The position numbers and the translations under genes are program-made. A DNA stretch of 63,456 bases, counting the filler, from Guillardia theta CCMP2712 (lineage: Eukaryota > Protista > Cryptophyta), in NCBI RefSeq assembly GCF_000315625.1. It is 7 parts of 7 records of this genome, joined end to end, with 100 filler letters (N's around TTAATTAATTAA, not from the genome) between each part and the next. Parts side by side here need not be neighbours in the genome. Positions count along the whole stretch, not along the records: positions 24,541 to 52,617 come from NW_005434607.1; 6 more parts are not named here. One strand, given 5' to 3'. Of this stretch, positions 32,654 through 47,645 are shown piece after piece (position 1 is the stretch's first letter; each line of letters starts with the position of its first letter). The notes beneath the pieces were generated by a model, which was not told where the DNA came from, did not search any database, and worked only from the letters and a program-made list of their open reading frames with translations.

Positions 32654-33754
32654 ACGCATCCTCTTGCTCTCTCACCTCCTTCTCAGCCACCAGGAATTCT
32701 CAACGACGTCTTCCTCACCTGCGACACCATCAGCGCTAGTTTCTGCGCGCAGCAGATCGGCGTGGGATGCGATGAGTGCCCTTTATCCTGTGGCTCCTGC
32801 AAGACCTGCTACCAGGTTTGAGCCCCTTGCCGCAGTGCAAGGCACTTGCTCCCTCCTCCGTCTCGTGCCTTCCCACCTGTTCCTCTCTTCCTCCTCCTCT
32901 GCATTCCCTCTGTTTTCCTTTTCTCCACCTCCCTGCCCTTCCCTGCTCTGCTCCTTGCCCGCGCTCCCCTGTCATTCTCTCCAACCCCTCACTGGTCTCG
33001 TCACGTTGGACACGTGTGCCCCCTCCCTTTCCTTGTCAATCTTTCCGGAAAACTTTGGAAACGGGAAAGATGAACAGGGGATCAGCAAGAAGAAGCACCC
33101 TCTCCTTCCTTCCTCCTGCCAAGTTCTCTGCTTGAGACACCTTCTTCTTCAGTTCCCCTCCTCACTCCCTCATCTTCTCATCTCCCTCGCAGGACAGGAA
33201 GCAGTTCTACTATGGCGTGGCCCCCCCGCCCACCGTCAACTTGACGCTGCCCGAAGATCTGCCTCGGTGCCCCAGCTCGTCAATCCGCTCGCGGTGATTT
33301 TCAAATCCTCTTATCATCATTCCTTCTCTCCCTCCTCCCTCCTCTCCTTCTCTGGTCCCGTCCTCCTCTCCCTCCACCATCTCCGTCTACCCCCTCCACG
33401 TGCTCCCTGTCTACATCCCCCTTCCATGCTTCATTCCATTCTCCGCCTACTCCCAGCCTGCCTCATTTCTCTCTACCGCAAGTCTCTTCACAACCCTGCA
33501 CCCTACCCCCGTTCTAACAGGCAGGCAGATGCGGTGACGACCCCTACTGCATCCTCTCCGTCTGCAACAAGGGCCTGGCGGACTGCACAGTCGAAGGCAT
33601 CGCCTCGGTCTGCAAGGACCTGAGCTGCTGGGGGCTGATGAGCAGTATCGTCACCAACTGCCTGTCTGCCGCCTGGAAGACGAGCAAGATCAAGGACCAG
33701 CTGACGTGCGAGTGTCTGACATGGCATTCCTACTGCCTTACCTTCCTTCAATGA
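28209..33754 (+). CDS. Large secreted Cys-rich mosaic protein: FN3-associated/chitobiase-C-like, LamG-like, ephrin-receptor-like Cys repeats, EGF, Myxococcus-type CGDG repeat; multi-exon
   Basis: Signal peptide; ATNDAVILYT..VVKAIA; WTHLLVLYD...LFVNG...GRVRLF; CPPGTFN / CPEGFFS; FTCTCLIGYLGDGFTC; CGDG...EGCDDGN...GDGCS..C. The last exon ends CLTFLQ*. Confidence 0.8.
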
Positions 33755-33847
33755 TCTCTTTTACTACTCCCTCGCCTGCTGATCAGAGTACCTAGTTGCA
33801 CCATCGGCGAGCAAGTTGCAAGGATGTGCGAGGCTTACAGGATCCCG

Positions 33848-33900
33848 GGTCCTTCAATGATGTCCGTGCATAAGCTTTGTGGACAGCATGTCATCCGACC
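33848..33900 (-). promoter_or_regulatory. SECIS element of the membrane selenoprotein gene
   Basis: On the minus strand: ggtc-gg-AUGA-C-AUGCUGUCC-ac-AAA-gcuuaugc-ac-GGACAUCAU-U-GA-A-g-gacc. It has the kink-turn core, a 9-position helix with one mismatch and apical AAA, 47 nt after the stop. Confidence 0.88.
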
Positions 33901-33946
33901 TCGGCTCTTGAAACTCTCCGCGCACCCTTCACTTCACCTTCTGCAT

Positions 33947-34870
33947 TCATATCCCGTCGTCCGCCCTGATCGCCTTCCACTCCTCGCGTATCTTCCGCAG
34001 TTTGCCAACAAGGTCCGCATTCCAGAATGTTGCAAAGAAGAACAGCGCAAACCCGGCATACGTCATGCTCAAGAAGACCAACCCGACAGTAGAAAGACAG
34101 GACATAGATTCCATCCCCGTGCTACACGTGTGGTCAAAGCTGCCCTCGCCGATGTAGCACGTGAAACATGAACTCCCCTCGCCGACCGCGTACGACCCTC
34201 CCCCGCAGTCAAACGAGCCACAGTCAGTGCTGGCGTTGCATGACCGAGGAGGCGACATTGCGATCCTCACAGCGCAGTTGGGAACGTACTGGCTCGAACC
34301 AGGCCATGGCCCCGCAGGCCACACGTTCGTGTCTTGCAGAACATGGCGCATGTTGTCACCCAGGATCAGGATAGCCGCCAGGAGCGTGAGGTAGGCAGGG
34401 CCAAAGCGCATGCAGTGACCAGGGATATGTCTTCTGCCATTGACAGCGTTCCTGAGGACGAAGACGAAGGAGAAGGAGAAAACTAGAAAATTAACACCCA
34501 GGGATAGGAAGTGCCCTAGCTGCCTAGACGCGCTGGTGACGGTGCCTCCTAGGAGGGGGATCACCAGCGCAGGCCAGCATCATGCACCCACAAGTGCAGG
34601 GATGGATAGAAGGAGGGTGAGGAAGGAAATGATCAACCCCTTCCTCCCTCCCTCCACCTGCCCCTTCACTTCTCCCACCTCCACATCCACCCTTACTTGC
34701 CCTTCCTCAGCAGCTCTCGCAGAGGAGAGGAGAGGCTCTTCCTCATCCTGTTGCTGCTCATGAATGGTGGGAGAGGAGGTGGATGGAGAGGAGGTGGAGG
34801 GGCCTCAGCTCGTGCATCCGCCTCCCTTCCTTGCGCTCTTCGGCACAAACCTGCATGAATCGCCGGCCAT
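33947..34870 (-). CDS. Membrane selenoprotein (MSP-like), 307 aa, with two in-frame UGA/Sec (codons 22 and 97)
   Basis: ATG 34870: MAGDSCRFVPKSARKGGGCTS-U(34805-34807)-GPS...LLLSIPALVGA-U(34580-34582)-CWPALVIP. It continues in frame into the multi-TM ORF ending at 33947. A SECIS lies downstream. Confidence 0.85.
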
Positions 34871-35170
34871 GCCGAATTGGGACAAGGTGGGTTAGGATGG
34901 AATTTAGGGGGTAGAGGTACTTCAAGTACCGGTACATGGACCATTTTTTCAGTATTGAAACAAGGGGTATGAGCAATGATAGCACGGGTGGTCATAACTG
35001 CGGTAGCTTGTTGTAGTTTTGGGCATGGCTGGAAGGCTGCTAGATAGACAGGGGTAGGGTAGAAAGACAACGGGTTCCAATGATGGATCATAGAAGGGGT
35101 ACAATACGCAATTCTACCTACTGAATTCAAGGGGTAGATGGATGGTGGTGGGTTGGGGGGTGGGGGGTTG

Positions 35171-35438
35171 TTGTTTGTGCTAGAAACGGGAGGGGCAACA
35201 ATATGAAACGTCGCATTATGGACTCCACGAAAATGCGGGGGATGAGGGTAATGTGAACGAGGGGGATGAGGTTTTACCCTCATACCGCACGCAAGGGACG
35301 AGTTTTAGCGATTTGAAACAGGATTTGAAAGGTCCCCTCCAAACCCACCAAGCTTCACACTGGGTGGCCCACATCCCCCCGCATTTGGAAAAAGAGAACG
35401 ATTCGTATTGTTGCCCCTCTCATTCCTAGCACAAACAA
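35171..35438. repeat. Imperfect ~41-nt inverted repeat pair (MITE-like) inside a GGGTAGGGT-rich non-coding region
   Basis: ttgtttgtgctagaaacgggaggggcaacaatatgaaacgt (35171-35211) versus acgattcgtattgttgcccctctcattcctagcacaaacaa (35398-35438). Confidence 0.7.
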
Positions 35439-36453
35439 TCTACCCCCGTCCAGAGGACCCCTCCTTTTTGACCCCACCCCCTAAATATCATGTTGGATTA
35501 CTATATGCTCCCTGCTGAAACACCGTTGTTCAGAGGAGACCTGTCCACCTCCACCCTACCCTAATAGACACAGCACCCTACTTTTATCGTATAGGAAATG
35601 GGTACCGTTACTACCCTACCTCATCCTGTCTAATAGAGACATGATGGGGTCTTTTTACCTCTTATCCAAGCTGAATTAGTGGGTAGGGTGATCAATTCAT
35701 GTAATCCAGGGGTAGGTAGTCATGGAGTGCCTTTTGCATGTTATAAAGATGTCTAACAGGGGTGGTCTTGAAATTGTGTTTGTGGGGGTAGGGTATCACT
35801 GAACGGGTGAAATAAAGTTGAAGGTCATCCAGGCCAGTCATTACGTGGGGTAATATGATGATTCATTGTGGGTGTATGTGCACTTGAATGGAATGATGGG
35901 GGTAGGGTAGATAAGTGGCATCATGAAATATGGGTAGGGTAATTCTGGATCATGCTTGTGTGTGGTGGGGGTAGTCAAGGGGGGTAGGGTAGTCTTCTCT
36001 GGGCGAACATGGAAGGAAATGAACTCAAGGAAAGCACGAGTACCAGGAATGACATGAGCAGAAGGACGGTAGGAGAGACAGTACAGGTGATGCAGGCGAT
36101 TCAAGGGATGCAGGCGCTACATGAGTTGCAGGTGGTGCAGGAGTTGTTAGGAGGAGTGGAAGGGGCAAGATGTGTAGCAAGGCGAAGAGGATATGGGTGA
36201 GGAGGGAGCATGGGCAAGGGCAGTTAATCATTTGGTCAAACTCGGAAGCTCGAGGATAGATGGGTACGTGGGGAAAAGTTTGTATACAGTGTAAGTGTGA
36301 AAAGCTGAATTATTCAGGATATCTCAAATACATGTACGGCGGCAATTATATTTAGAGCAGAGCATCGCGAGTATAGCGATTTGCTTCCAGAGTAGCAAGT
36401 CAAGGGTCCATGCTAGTCGTAAGATGTCTTAACTTGTAACTTGTAGGGATATC

Positions 36454-45388: not shown

Positions 45389-46476
45389 CTAGTGCTCGAT
45401 GACGAGGATCACCTTCCCCGTCGTCCCCATCTTGTGCTCGATCACCTCTACGTGACTCTCCGCCGCCTCCGACAGGGGAAACTTCACCCCAGCCACGGGC
45501 TTGATCGAGCCCTTTTCCAGCCTCTCCTGGATGCCGTCAAAGACAGACTGAAGCTCTTCCGGGGAACCCAGGCCCAGCAGCCCGACGATGTTCCCTTCCG
45601 TCGTCATGAGGGAGCGCGGGTTGATCTCCACACTTCCCCTGCTCCCGATGATCACCACCGTCCCGTTCTTCTTCAGCAGCTTCAGGTCCTTGTCGAGGTT
45701 TGCATGTGCCGCCATCTCCAAGATGACGTCGGCTCCCTTCTTCTCCGGCGTCATCGCCAGGACCTCCTCCATGTACCCCTCCTGGTTGTGCAGCACAGCG
45801 TACGCCCCTTGGGAGCGGATCAGCTCGAGTCCAGCTGGCGTCCCGGCTGTCCCAACGACGGTGCACCCATGGCTGATGGCAAGCTGTATCGCAGCTATCC
45901 CGACGCCTCCTGACGCGCCATGCACGAAGACCACGGAGCCTGGCTTGGTAGCGACCCTTGTGAACAAGGCTCTGTACGCCGTCCTGTACACAACCCCGAT
46001 GCCCGCGCCCTGCTCGAAGGACACTGCCTCCGGGAGCAGATGGACGTCGGTGAGGTTCGCAGTGCAGTACTGGGCGTACGTTCCTGTCACGCTCCCGCTG
46101 AGCCAGACTCTGTCCCCCTCACGAAACTGGGTCACCCCCTCCCCGACTGCATGAATGATTCCAGCGCCGTCCGTCCCTGGTGTGTAAGGGAGCTGAGGAA
46201 GCTGAGCATAGACTCCTGCTCTCTTGTACGTGTCCACCGCTGTAGAGCAAGAGCATCATGTCAGCCCGTCATCAAGTACACAGCGCAACAACTCTTCATT
46301 CCTCCCCTAGCTACCTCTCCCTCCCTCCCTCCCCTTCTCCCTGCTCTCCACTCACGGTTGATGCCGGCGGCGAAGAGCTTGACGCAGACCTGGCTCTTGC
46401 CGGGGGAGGGGATGGGAAGCTCTGCGATCTTCAGCTCCTCGGGGCCTCCAAACGACTGAACGCTCACTGCCTGCAT
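45389..46476 (-). CDS. Zeta-crystallin-like NADPH:quinone reductase, 2 exons
   Basis: FGGPEEL...AAGINPVDTYKRAG...PYTPGTDGAG...YRTAYRAL...VHGASGGVGIAAIQLA...IGSRG..INPR..TTGKVIL. Confidence 0.93.
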
Positions 46477-46696: not shown

Positions 46697-47560
46697 ATGC
46701 TCAAGGGTCTGCTTCGACCAGCCCAGGCCATCGTTCCTCGGACCTCAAGAATGCTCAGCTCGCAAACTCCACGTCCCACCAAGAGGATCACGATCGAGCT
46801 CGTCAGCGATACCATGTGACCCAACGGGTACATTGGAAAGCGCCACCTCTGGAACGCCATGAAGGAGGTACATTCGCATCCAATGTCGCCAGGGGATCCG
46901 CTGGGGTTCACCCTCATCCGGGTCCCCTTCTTCCTCGAGCCGGACTATCCGCGCGACGAGGAGTTCGGGGAGACGAACAGGGAGAGGCTGGTCCGCAAGT
47001 GGGGAGGGATCAGGGGTTGGGAGAGGCAGAAGCAGCAGCACAAGCTCAAGGAGCGCGGGCAGGAGGTGGGCATTGCGCACTTCAATCTGGACAGGATCGC
47101 CTCCAGCACCTTCAGGAGCCACCGGCTGGTGCAGTGGGTGACGAAGACGCGCGGTATCGTCGCGGCAGAGACGCTGTACGATCTGCTCAACTACCGGCAC
47201 TTCGAGGTAGGAGAGAAGCTCAACAGTACCCAGCTGCTCACGGACGCGGCGAGCAGAATCGGCATCGACAGGAAGGAGGTGGAGGACTTCTTGAGCTCGG
47301 AGGAGGGAACGAGAGAGATTCAGGAGGCGCAGCTTGCCCTGCGGAGGCTGAACATCAACAGCATCCCAACCTTCATGATCGGGGGAGAGTACATGTTCAG
47401 CGGGGCCCTCCACCACAAGGAGATGGTGCAGGTGTTCAGGGAGATCGAGAATGAGGGAGGAGCACCGGGCTCTTGCTTCGCTAAGATCCTTGGGATCGGC
47501 GAGGACGTGCTCGAGCAAACGATCGACCTTGACAAGCCGCCAAGATGGGAACAGGCATGA
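46697..47560 (+). CDS. DsbA/FrnE-family thioredoxin-fold selenoprotein, 287 aa, Sec at codon 41
   Basis: ATG 46697 MLKGLLRPAQAIVPRTSRML...ITIELVSDTM-U(46817-46819)-PNGYIGKRHL aligns with FrnE D..SD..CPWCYIGKRRL. It is in frame with the downstream PFFLEP...INSIPTF..SGA ORF. A SECIS follows. Confidence 0.9.
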
Positions 47561-47578: not shown

Positions 47579-47645
47579 CCTTTCGGATGACAGTTTGCTC
47601 GCAAAGCTCTCCATTCTCATGCACGAGCAAGCTCGAAGGTGAAGG
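47579..47645 (+). promoter_or_regulatory. SECIS element of the DsbA/FrnE selenoprotein gene
   Basis: ccuuu-cgg-AUGA(47587-90)-C-AGUUUGCUCG-c-AAA-gc...gca-CGAGCAAGCU-C-GA(47635-36)-A-ggu-gaagg: 10-bp helix, apical AAA and a lower helix. Confidence 0.9.

Follow-up and report, generated by a model that had tools for sequence, protein, structure and literature searches.

SELENOK and SELENOS are small selenoproteins with a single transmembrane (TM) helix and one selenocysteine (Sec) near the C-terminus, in a disordered cytosolic tail, and thioredoxin reductase carries a C-terminal Gly-Cys-Sec-Gly tail, a flexible Sec arm that shuttles electrons to and from thioredoxin. A further family, MSP (membrane selenoprotein), was published from Dictyostelium, Chlamydomonas, Volvox, and Ostreococcus, with two Sec residues (Lobanov et al. 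2007, Genome Biol 8:R198). According to this paper, a 75Se-labelled band of Dictyostelium corresponds to MSP, and Dictyostelium is the only organism for which the literature documents selenium incorporation into MSP. The alignment in the supplement of the same paper contained the motifs P-[AS]-L-V-G-[SA]-U-C-W-P, R-H-[VI]-L-Q-D, C-L-S..G-W, and W-N-A-D, and a Dictyostelium N-terminus with C-E-G-G-V-U (Lobanov et al. 2007, Genome Biol 8:R198). An algal selenoproteome survey (2020) counted 14 selenoproteins in Guillardia theta and reported MSP almost always in its Sec form. In the later searchable literature, MSP was listed only as a predicted selenoprotein without function; known since 2007, it is among the few widespread eukaryotic selenoprotein families for which no function has been proposed. 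Here we analyzed a stretch of 63,456 nucleotides (filler included) from the cryptophyte alga G. theta CCMP2712, which we refer to as the window, and in particular a gene on its minus strand between positions 33947 and 34870. We found that this gene is very probably an expressed, intron-free MSP of the cryptophyte alga with 307 residues, in which Sec22 and Sec97 are decoded under a single SECIS (selenocysteine insertion sequence) element in the 3' untranslated region (3'UTR). The gene adds a member to a family already described and represents no new kind, since a two-Sec MSP itself had previously been published.

The gene consisted of the following elements.

33947..34870, minus strand: coding sequence (CDS) of 307 codons plus stop TGA 33947-33949, start ATG 34868-34870, with two UGAs inside
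34805..34816, minus strand: motif of UGA-1 (codon 22, TGA 34805-34807), Cys19-Thr-Ser-Sec22 (CxxU) in the disordered N-terminal tail, context G-G-G-C-T-S-U-G
34571..34582, minus strand: motif of UGA-2 (codon 97, TGA 34580-34582), Sec97-Cys98-Trp-Pro (UCWP), the MSP family signature, context I-P-A-L-V-G-A-U-C-W-P
33745..34878, minus strand: intron-free mRNA of ~1.13 kb with 8-nt 5'UTR, CDS, and ~200-nt 3'UTR, from contigs and raw RNA reads
33845..33904, minus strand: SECIS element in the 3'UTR, with helix I, AUGA/GA core, helix II, AAA, and a small apical stem

Minus-strand translation of 33947-34870 contained exactly two in-frame TGAs, at codons 22 and 97. The initial annotation of the window had proposed this intron-free frame of 307 residues, read from ATG 34870 through two UGAs, and both the translation and the gap-free contigs described below agreed with it. 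It had also stated that the listed 205-aa open reading frame (ORF, 33947-34564) lacked an ATG start, and this ORF indeed began with GTG, shortly 3' of UGA-2. The first in-frame Met after ATG 34870 was codon 153, and an in-frame TAA/TAG was located 7 codons upstream of ATG 34870. Since there was no in-frame ATG before Met153 and a stop lay upstream, a full-length product requires the decoding of both UGAs. As had been expected of standard gene callers, the gene was mis-annotated in public protein predictions, which gave a 154-aa form starting from Met153, without both selenocysteines and with two of the four membrane helices gone. These predictions would be in line with the alternative that only UGA-2 or neither UGA is decoded, such that the segment from ATG 34870 to UGA-1 is a short upstream ORF, or the locus a pseudogene or non-coding leader, and the product starts downstream, e.g. 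as the Met153 form. A start at Met153, the first available after codon 1, would however delete TM1, TM2, and the signature motif.

Expression data were obtained by aligning the reads and contigs of four public runs to positions 33300-35600. Contig X1 (1133 nt) was identical to 33746-34878 with 0 mismatches and 0 gaps, contig X2 (from a separate study) covered 33745-34867 gap-free, and a piece from a third study (X3) had its end at 34878. In a 3'-biased raw-read RNA-seq run (X23, 2026), untemplated T runs, i.e. poly(A) on the mRNA strand, were found at 33743 and 33734. We took the contigs for transcripts, since they ended at the poly(A) site on one side and 8 nt ahead of the ATG on the other. 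This 5' end, just ahead of ATG 34870, also argued against a product that starts downstream. No splice joints were reported within 33300-35600 in the aligned reads and contigs, and since the contigs were collinear with the genome, neither UGA was spliced out; the question raised in the initial annotation, whether the UGAs are retained in the transcript, was thereby answered in the affirmative. A candidate intron acceptor at ~34549 (a pyrimidine tract followed by AG) was ruled out by the collinear transcripts and by the protein conservation across the site. One unspliced mRNA bears both UGAs and a SECIS-shaped hairpin.

This hairpin was found where a SECIS had been predicted, 47 nt past the stop codon, between stop 33947 and the poly(A) site at ~33743, i.e. 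within the mapped 3'UTR. It started at 33904/33900 with a helix I of 7 bp and one bulge, followed by a core of AUGA (33891-33894) opposite GA (33854-33855), a helix II with 8 of 10 Watson-Crick pairs and two C-U mismatches, AAA at 33876-33878, 12 nt after AUGA, and an apical stem of two pairs. The features that characterize eukaryotic SECIS elements, an AUGA/GA core, a helix II of ~9-13 bp, AA(A) 10-13 nt further on, a helix I below the internal loop, and a location in the 3'UTR, were all present. Our own pattern scan returned 5 SECIS-like hairpins in 56 kb (both strands) versus 0.4 expected from shuffles, and the chance expectation of such a hairpin in the 204-nt 3'UTR was ~0.002-0.02. When homologous loci were scanned by pattern, comparable elements were located behind the stop codon in 23, 13 of them distinct, and the SECIS of a 97% identical relative was the same but for one apical-loop base. 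Moreover, the unpaired stretches U-C-G-G-A-U-G-A-C-A, C-A-A-A-G-C-U, A-U-G-C-A-C-G, and G-A-A-G-G were common to this element and to a second SECIS of the window (47587-47636), and the helix II arms of the two differed, each being still self-complementary. Plain minimum free energy folding of the SECIS region gave z = 0.2, so that stability alone does not mark the element out.

We further investigated if both UGA positions were conserved. Database searches used the read-through protein in separate pieces, and the homologue P0006 served as a full-length proxy for folding. The 210-aa piece after UGA-2 had 22 protein matches, the closest being a marine metagenome protein (97% identical) and a transcript of Hanusia phi (cryptophyte, Geminigeraceae; 78%). 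Several database homologues read W at the positions of the window's TGAs; in the DNA of L001 and L002, and likewise in L003, a genomic contig of 25 kb, both were TGA. The R-H-V-L-Q-D motif was used to seed a metagenome scan, which was hence unbiased towards TGA and returned 80 loci with 68 distinct sequences. TGA stood directly before C-W-P (site 2) in all 68 distinct loci, and C-x2-TGA or C-x4-TGA in an N-terminal tail with an upstream ATG (site 1) was found in 48 of them. An exhaustive profile-free search with P0006 yielded 264 cluster representatives. Among the 24 database proteins crossing site 2 (from the post-UGA-2 and P0006 searches), 10 had Cys in place of Sec (C-C-W-P), and one of these was also a Cys form in the tail (C-E-Y-G-N-C, i.e. 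C-x4-C). The initial annotation had made its case depend on homologues with conservation upstream of and across both UGAs, and with TGA or Cys at each, and such homologues were found. Selenoproteins are classically recognized by such a combination of Sec/Cys pairs, here at both positions, with conservation that flanks the UGAs.

A relative that is 96-97% identical in DNA (L085/L086) kept both TGAs, the frame, and the SECIS, with C-R-S-U as its site-1 motif. Compared to the window, its CDS differed by substitutions and one 3-nt indel only, and frame-breaking indels were located upstream of the ATG. The restriction to in-frame changes from the ATG onward, the protein conservation that distant relatives show even 5' of both TGAs, and the maintenance of the C-x-x-TGA context all stood against a leader or pseudogene ahead of a shorter product; modest SECIS scores spoke in its favor, and we consider partial or absent decoding very improbable, with next to no weight.

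Several points weighed against the decoding of both UGAs in an MSP gene. No Rfam SECIS family was detected at E<=10 in 33000-35500; most Rfam SECIS seeds come from animals. A covariance model of the SECIS elements of 13 homologues scored 8.9 bits (E 4.9 over 56 kb; ~0.02 scaled to the 3'UTR), and the same model gave 15.9 bits for the window's second SECIS. The UGA-spanning contigs X1 and X2 were only guessed to be RNA, and X23, the sole run with certain RNA reads, was 3'-biased and had no coverage of its own at the UGAs. The gene is known here from DNA and transcript sequence alone.

The initial annotation had pointed to the MSP family, and membership was borne out by the published alignment and by BLASTP. 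The Sec-Cys motif of MSP in the first TM helix, P-[AS]-L-[IV]-G-x-U-C-W-P, was matched by the window's I-P-A-L-V-G-A-U-C-W-P, and the further motifs R-H-V-L-Q-D, C-L-S..G-W, T-Y-x-G-F, and W-N-A-[DN] were all recovered (alignments A1, A2, and the published alignment), with the R, H, Q, and D of the TM3 motif invariant in A1 and near-invariant in A2. The second, N-terminal Sec of MSP corresponded to C-T-S-U at codons 19-22. The post-UGA-2 piece aligned at full length with an Ostreococcus-type locus, L062 (E = 2e-22, 31% identity), which by eye reads like the O. lucimarinus MSP row of the published alignment, allowing for optical character recognition errors. The shared motifs and the alignment to L062 therefore identified the gene as MSP. 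Like Dictyostelium MSP, it has two Sec, and one SECIS is present in the 3'UTR. It differed in its site 1 (C-x2-U versus C-x4-U in Dictyostelium), in a ~55-residue insert with 8 Cys between TM3 and TM4, where published members have ~10 residues, and in its cryptophyte host.

Three observations were made on the N-termini of other family members. In a cryptophyte-like subfamily (L003, L005-L013, L015), the N-terminal motif [AS]-C-[AS]-[YW]-[VQ]-P-[RK]-S-[QE]-R was conserved; the window has S-C-R-F-V-P-K-S-A-R, which holds a further conserved Cys, Cys6 (34853-34855), upstream of CxxU. In Ostreococcus-like and other prasinophyte-like loci (L062-L064, L069-L077, L080), the frame extended 5' of the Met taken as start in the 2007 alignment, and this additional stretch was conserved, containing ..P-L-L.. 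and C-[AD]-[SAT]-TGA (C-A-S-U ahead of the published Ostreococcus start). Judged from these sequences, prasinophyte-like MSPs probably also carry two Sec and a longer N-terminus than published. Finally, in MSP homologues from gut metagenomes (L047-L057), CWP was preceded by TGA, the tail lacked Sec, and a well-formed SECIS followed the stop at a distance of ~140 nt; their host is probably a gut protist.

For the architecture of the protein, we relied on an AlphaFold model of P0006, for which an alignment of 79 sequences was used; P0006 is 47% identical, shares the Cys-rich loop, and has W in place of each Sec. The model (pLDDT 80, pTM 0.71) contained four long helices, with helical segments at 57-82, 87-94, 101-132, 142-170, and 240-265, a C-terminal helix at 267-283, a disordered N-tail (pLDDT ~50), and a small beta-rich domain at 175-235 (pLDDT 84-95), which is the Cys-rich insert. 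The helix positions in the window protein were mapped from this model in combination with hydropathy, and gave the following features.

34727..34744, minus strand: E-E-E-P-L-L, an acidic dileucine-type motif in the N-tail, from the motif count in tails
34583..34639, minus strand: TM1a, residues 78-96, ending I-P-A-L-V-G-A, by hydropathy; corresponds to helix 57-82 of the P0006 model
34454..34510, minus strand: TM2, residues 121-139, from the P0006 model and hydropathy
34331..34402, minus strand: TM3, residues 157-180, ending in the near-invariant D-x-x-R-H-V-L-Q-D (alignments A1, A2)
34091..34276, minus strand: Cys-rich ectodomain insert in loop 3 (8 Cys, one N-x-S sequon), in the cryptophyte-like subfamily only
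34022..34096, minus strand: TM4, residues 259-283, with C-L-S..G and T-Y-x-G-F, ending W-N-A-D-L, from alignments, model, and hydropathy
33950..34021, minus strand: basic amphipathic C-terminal helix with 6 Lys/Arg, predicted cytosolic, from model and hydropathy

The protein was thus predicted to be a four-TM bundle with both termini in the cytosol and a glycosylatable loop-3 ectodomain, the latter mapped to residues 181-258. The termini were assigned to the cytosol because of the distribution of Lys/Arg, with 2 on the N-side of TM1, 1 in loop 1, 4 in loop 2, and 6 in the C-tail. Three other features agreed with this orientation: N-x-S/T sequons in loop 3 (one in the window and five in the long loop of P0082, by our own count), the SelW-like N-terminal domains of relatives, which start without a signal peptide, and an enrichment of [DE]xxxL[LI], found in 19 of 68 tails versus 2.6 +/- 1.6 in shuffled tails. 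E-E-E-P-L-L is a possible cytosolic sorting signal on the strength of this motif. A re-entrant hairpin for the 32-residue hydrophobic stretch around Sec97 was rejected, as it would place the Lys/Arg-rich loop 2 and the C-tail outside and the sequon- and disulfide-rich ectodomain in the cytosol. Counted from sequence and secondary structure only, ~19 hydrophobic residues separate Sec97 from the cytosolic end of TM1, and the Sec97-Cys98 pair was predicted at a break of the TM1 helix, in the outer leaflet or at the interface. Residues at the same level would be Asp172, Arg175, His176, Gln179, and Asp180, all from the outer end of TM3, conserved Arg/His of loop 1, and several conserved Cys at the ectodomain base.

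Clues to the function of MSP came from domain fusions in relatives. In four of them (L061, L081, P0082, P0146), TM4 was followed by a C-terminal thioredoxin (Pfam E ~1e-21 to 1e-24; active site W-C-x-P-C or F-C-K-P-C) and then by a tail with C-x-x at its end, and the N-tail motif was missing. In the DNA of L061 (140-1366) and L081 (163-1488), the C-x-x tail continued as TGA-Asp-stop, i.e. C-x-x-U-D. Another relative, P0088, carried a C-terminal glutaredoxin (C-P-F-C), and all five of these fused proteins had very long loop-3 ectodomains. Moreover, six metatranscriptome loci (L036, L039, L041, L043, L044, L051) had an N-terminal SelW-like Rdx domain (~100-600 in each), which was above the Pfam threshold in 5 of the 6 and whose W-C-G-S-U-G-Y motif is the site-1 Sec. 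The presence of interchangeable thiol/selenol redox modules on the putatively cytosolic side of the MSP domain favors a redox role, and it is because of these modules that we regard Sec97-Cys98 as a candidate redox centre and the CxxU tail as a candidate mobile arm. As a separate observation, two selenoprotein families are joined in the Rdx-MSP loci; GST-MSRA is presented as the first such fusion in the 2020 algal survey.

In the mechanism that we propose, a pocket embedded in the membrane would hold the Sec97-Cys98 pair, a redox centre that would alternate between the selenol/thiol and the selenenylsulfide state. The flexible CxxU tail would act as a mobile cytosolic redox arm, comparable to the C-terminal Cys-Sec tail of thioredoxin reductase, and would couple the protein to the thioredoxin/glutaredoxin system. 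This mechanism as a whole, a vicinal Sec-Cys redox centre with a mobile CxxU arm, is plausible at somewhat less than an even chance. Taken together as one overall explanation, covering identity, architecture, and mechanism, the account given here is the best we have, and we hold it to be highly likely.

A trans-membrane relay from CxxU to UC to the Cys-rich loop had been suggested in the initial annotation. Its redox character was supported by the redox-domain fusions; its path was not, in that the tail and UC were predicted on opposite sides of the membrane and the loop was lineage-specific. The 8-Cys insert is not found in Ostreococcus, Dictyostelium, or Chlamydomonas MSP, and since green-algal and Dictyostelium members lack it, it is not a core catalytic element. 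As an insert of one lineage that most of the family lacks, the Cys-rich loop probably does not serve as an obligatory relay station.

The same topology counted against our own mechanism, along with several other points. The tail and the fused redox domains were predicted cytosolic and Sec97-Cys98 with the conserved polar residues on the outer side, there was no conserved Cys bridging the tail and the outer Sec-Cys site, and 20 of 68 family members had no tail Sec motif. In DsbD/CcdA, access is provided by a cavity, and a comparable cavity might connect the arm and the centre of MSP. The depths and distances above were estimated from sequence, not from model coordinates. In addition, no structure of known function, solved or predicted, resembled the MSP fold beyond a generic four-helix bundle: the best match by Foldseek against the PDB had an E of 1.4, the best by VIA-align wide had a Z of 8.2, within the noise range of helical bundles, and nothing informative came from the ESM Atlas, whether searched by shape or by features, or from PDB sequences searched with a profile. 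Pfam had no family for the MSP domain when queried with the full-length Cys-form P0033 and the window pieces.

Alternatively, the same MSP gene may encode an outward-facing peroxidase or thiol oxidoreductase whose outer Sec-Cys alone acts on lipids or on lumenal/extracellular substrates, with the CxxU tail standing outside any relay and serving in regulation, sorting, or the binding of partners. The clustering of all near-invariant polar residues on the outer side with Sec97-Cys98, the members without tail Sec, and the dileucine-type sorting motif in the tail are consistent with this. What it hardly explains without a catalytic link is that the tail motif persists or is replaced on the same side by Rdx (N-terminal), Trx plus CxxU, or Grx (C-terminal), and we consider this alternative unlikely.

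The arrangement of the two chalcogen pairs also brought metal transfer into consideration. MerT hands metal on by way of two Cys pairs, one vicinal and located in TM1, the other cytosolic, and by analogy the same MSP gene might serve in soft metal or metalloid transfer, with the TM1 Sec-Cys binding Hg, Cu, Cd, Ag, or selenium species outside and passing them to the cytosolic CxxU. The layout is MerT-like: of the two chalcogen pairs, the vicinal one is predicted towards the outer side of TM1 and the other in the cytosol, and some Cys-form relatives (P0038, P0044) end in C-x-C tails. The three thioredoxin-fold modules fused to MSP (Trx W-C-x-P-C, Grx C-P-F-C, and SelW-like Rdx) point to electron transfer instead, and MerT was not among the Pfam matches of P0033 or the window pieces; metal transfer appears quite improbable.

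A more far-reaching reading, which we put forward tentatively and which is doubtful as it stands, is that MSP provides the membrane part of a modular trans-membrane redox relay based on selenium, whose Sec-Cys centre opens to the lumenal or extracellular leaflet. Swappable cytosolic modules (a bare CxxU arm, a SelW-like Rdx, thioredoxin with a CxxU tail, or glutaredoxin) would feed or drain the Sec-Cys, and the cryptophyte Cys-rich ectodomain would be a lineage-specific addition for binding a substrate or partner. Bacterial DsbD/CcdA would then have a eukaryotic counterpart by analogy, built on an unrelated fold.

Comparison with other known systems showed partial likeness in each case. DsbD/CcdA has 6-8 TM with two P-C-x-x-P helices, and DsbB/VKOR is a 4-TM bundle. 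MSP resembles these proteins, by analogy only, in proline-flanked redox residues within TM helices that are coupled or fused to thioredoxin-fold partners, and neither DsbD/CcdA nor DsbB/VKOR homology was among the top matches listed in the Foldseek PDB, VIA-align wide, Atlas, and PDB profile searches. It differs from them in having one vicinal pair in one helix, whereas DsbD has two Cys in two helices and DsbB/VKOR has CxxC and a quinone site. With thioredoxin reductase, MSP shares a vicinal Cys/Sec pair able to form a selenenylsulfide, a flexible terminal Sec arm, and, in some relatives, the succession of thioredoxin and a C-x-x-U-D tail. There is however no relation in sequence or fold; the order in MSP is Sec-Cys, the pair sits within a membrane helix break, and no flavin/NADPH domain is present. 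The CxxU followed by Gly recalls SELENOW/Rdx (Pfam PF10262), of which six relatives bear a true domain where the window's CxxU tail sits, whereas the 74-aa inter-UGA piece of the window had no significant Pfam match and only the short C-T-S-U-G motif. Similarly, MSP is like SELENOK and SELENOS in being membrane-anchored with Sec in a disordered, presumably cytosolic tail, and unlike them in sequence, in its four TM helices, and in the second Sec in the membrane domain.

For annotation, the result confirms a gene that ordinary callers reduce to a 154-aa fragment. For MSP itself, the fusions, the relocated CxxU, the Cys forms, and the predicted placement of Sec-Cys by Arg/His/Asp at the outer face make a redox function directly testable, and Dictyostelium and Chlamydomonas are genetically tractable hosts with MSP. 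We found no mention in the searchable literature of MSP fusions (SelW-like, thioredoxin, glutaredoxin), of a C-terminal CxxU behind thioredoxin, or of Cys forms at both sites, nor of the predicted outer-face position of Sec-Cys or the C-A-S-U extension upstream of the Ostreococcus start.

Three further features were recorded in the window.

34591..34672, minus strand: strong hairpin inside the MSP CDS, 5' of UGA-2 and ending 9 nt upstream of it, -50.7 kcal/mol, z = -3.1
46697-47560, plus strand: second selenoprotein gene, DsbA-like (Pfam PF01323, E = 9.6e-14), with an in-frame TGA and a SECIS
47587-47636, plus strand: second SECIS, 27 nt after the DsbA-like stop, helix II 10/11 bp, 15.9 bits, better-scoring than the MSP SECIS

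The hairpin inside the MSP CDS was kept in the 97% relative (z = -2.4) and absent in more distant homologues, i.e. it is lineage-specific. Permissive Rfam thresholds gave sub-threshold microRNA-like matches on it, and ribosome pausing ahead of UGA-2 is one example of a role it might have. In the DsbA-like gene, the in-frame TGA (46817-46819) occupied the position of the active-site Cys (S-D-T-M-U-P-N-G-Y-I-G-K), and the protein had a presequence-like N-terminus. As a second Sec gene with its own SECIS, it indicated that the genome uses selenocysteine. No tRNA genes were found in the analyzed piece. A 282-aa ORF (45389-46237, minus strand) resembled, by eye, proteins of the medium-chain dehydrogenase or quinone-oxidoreductase type.

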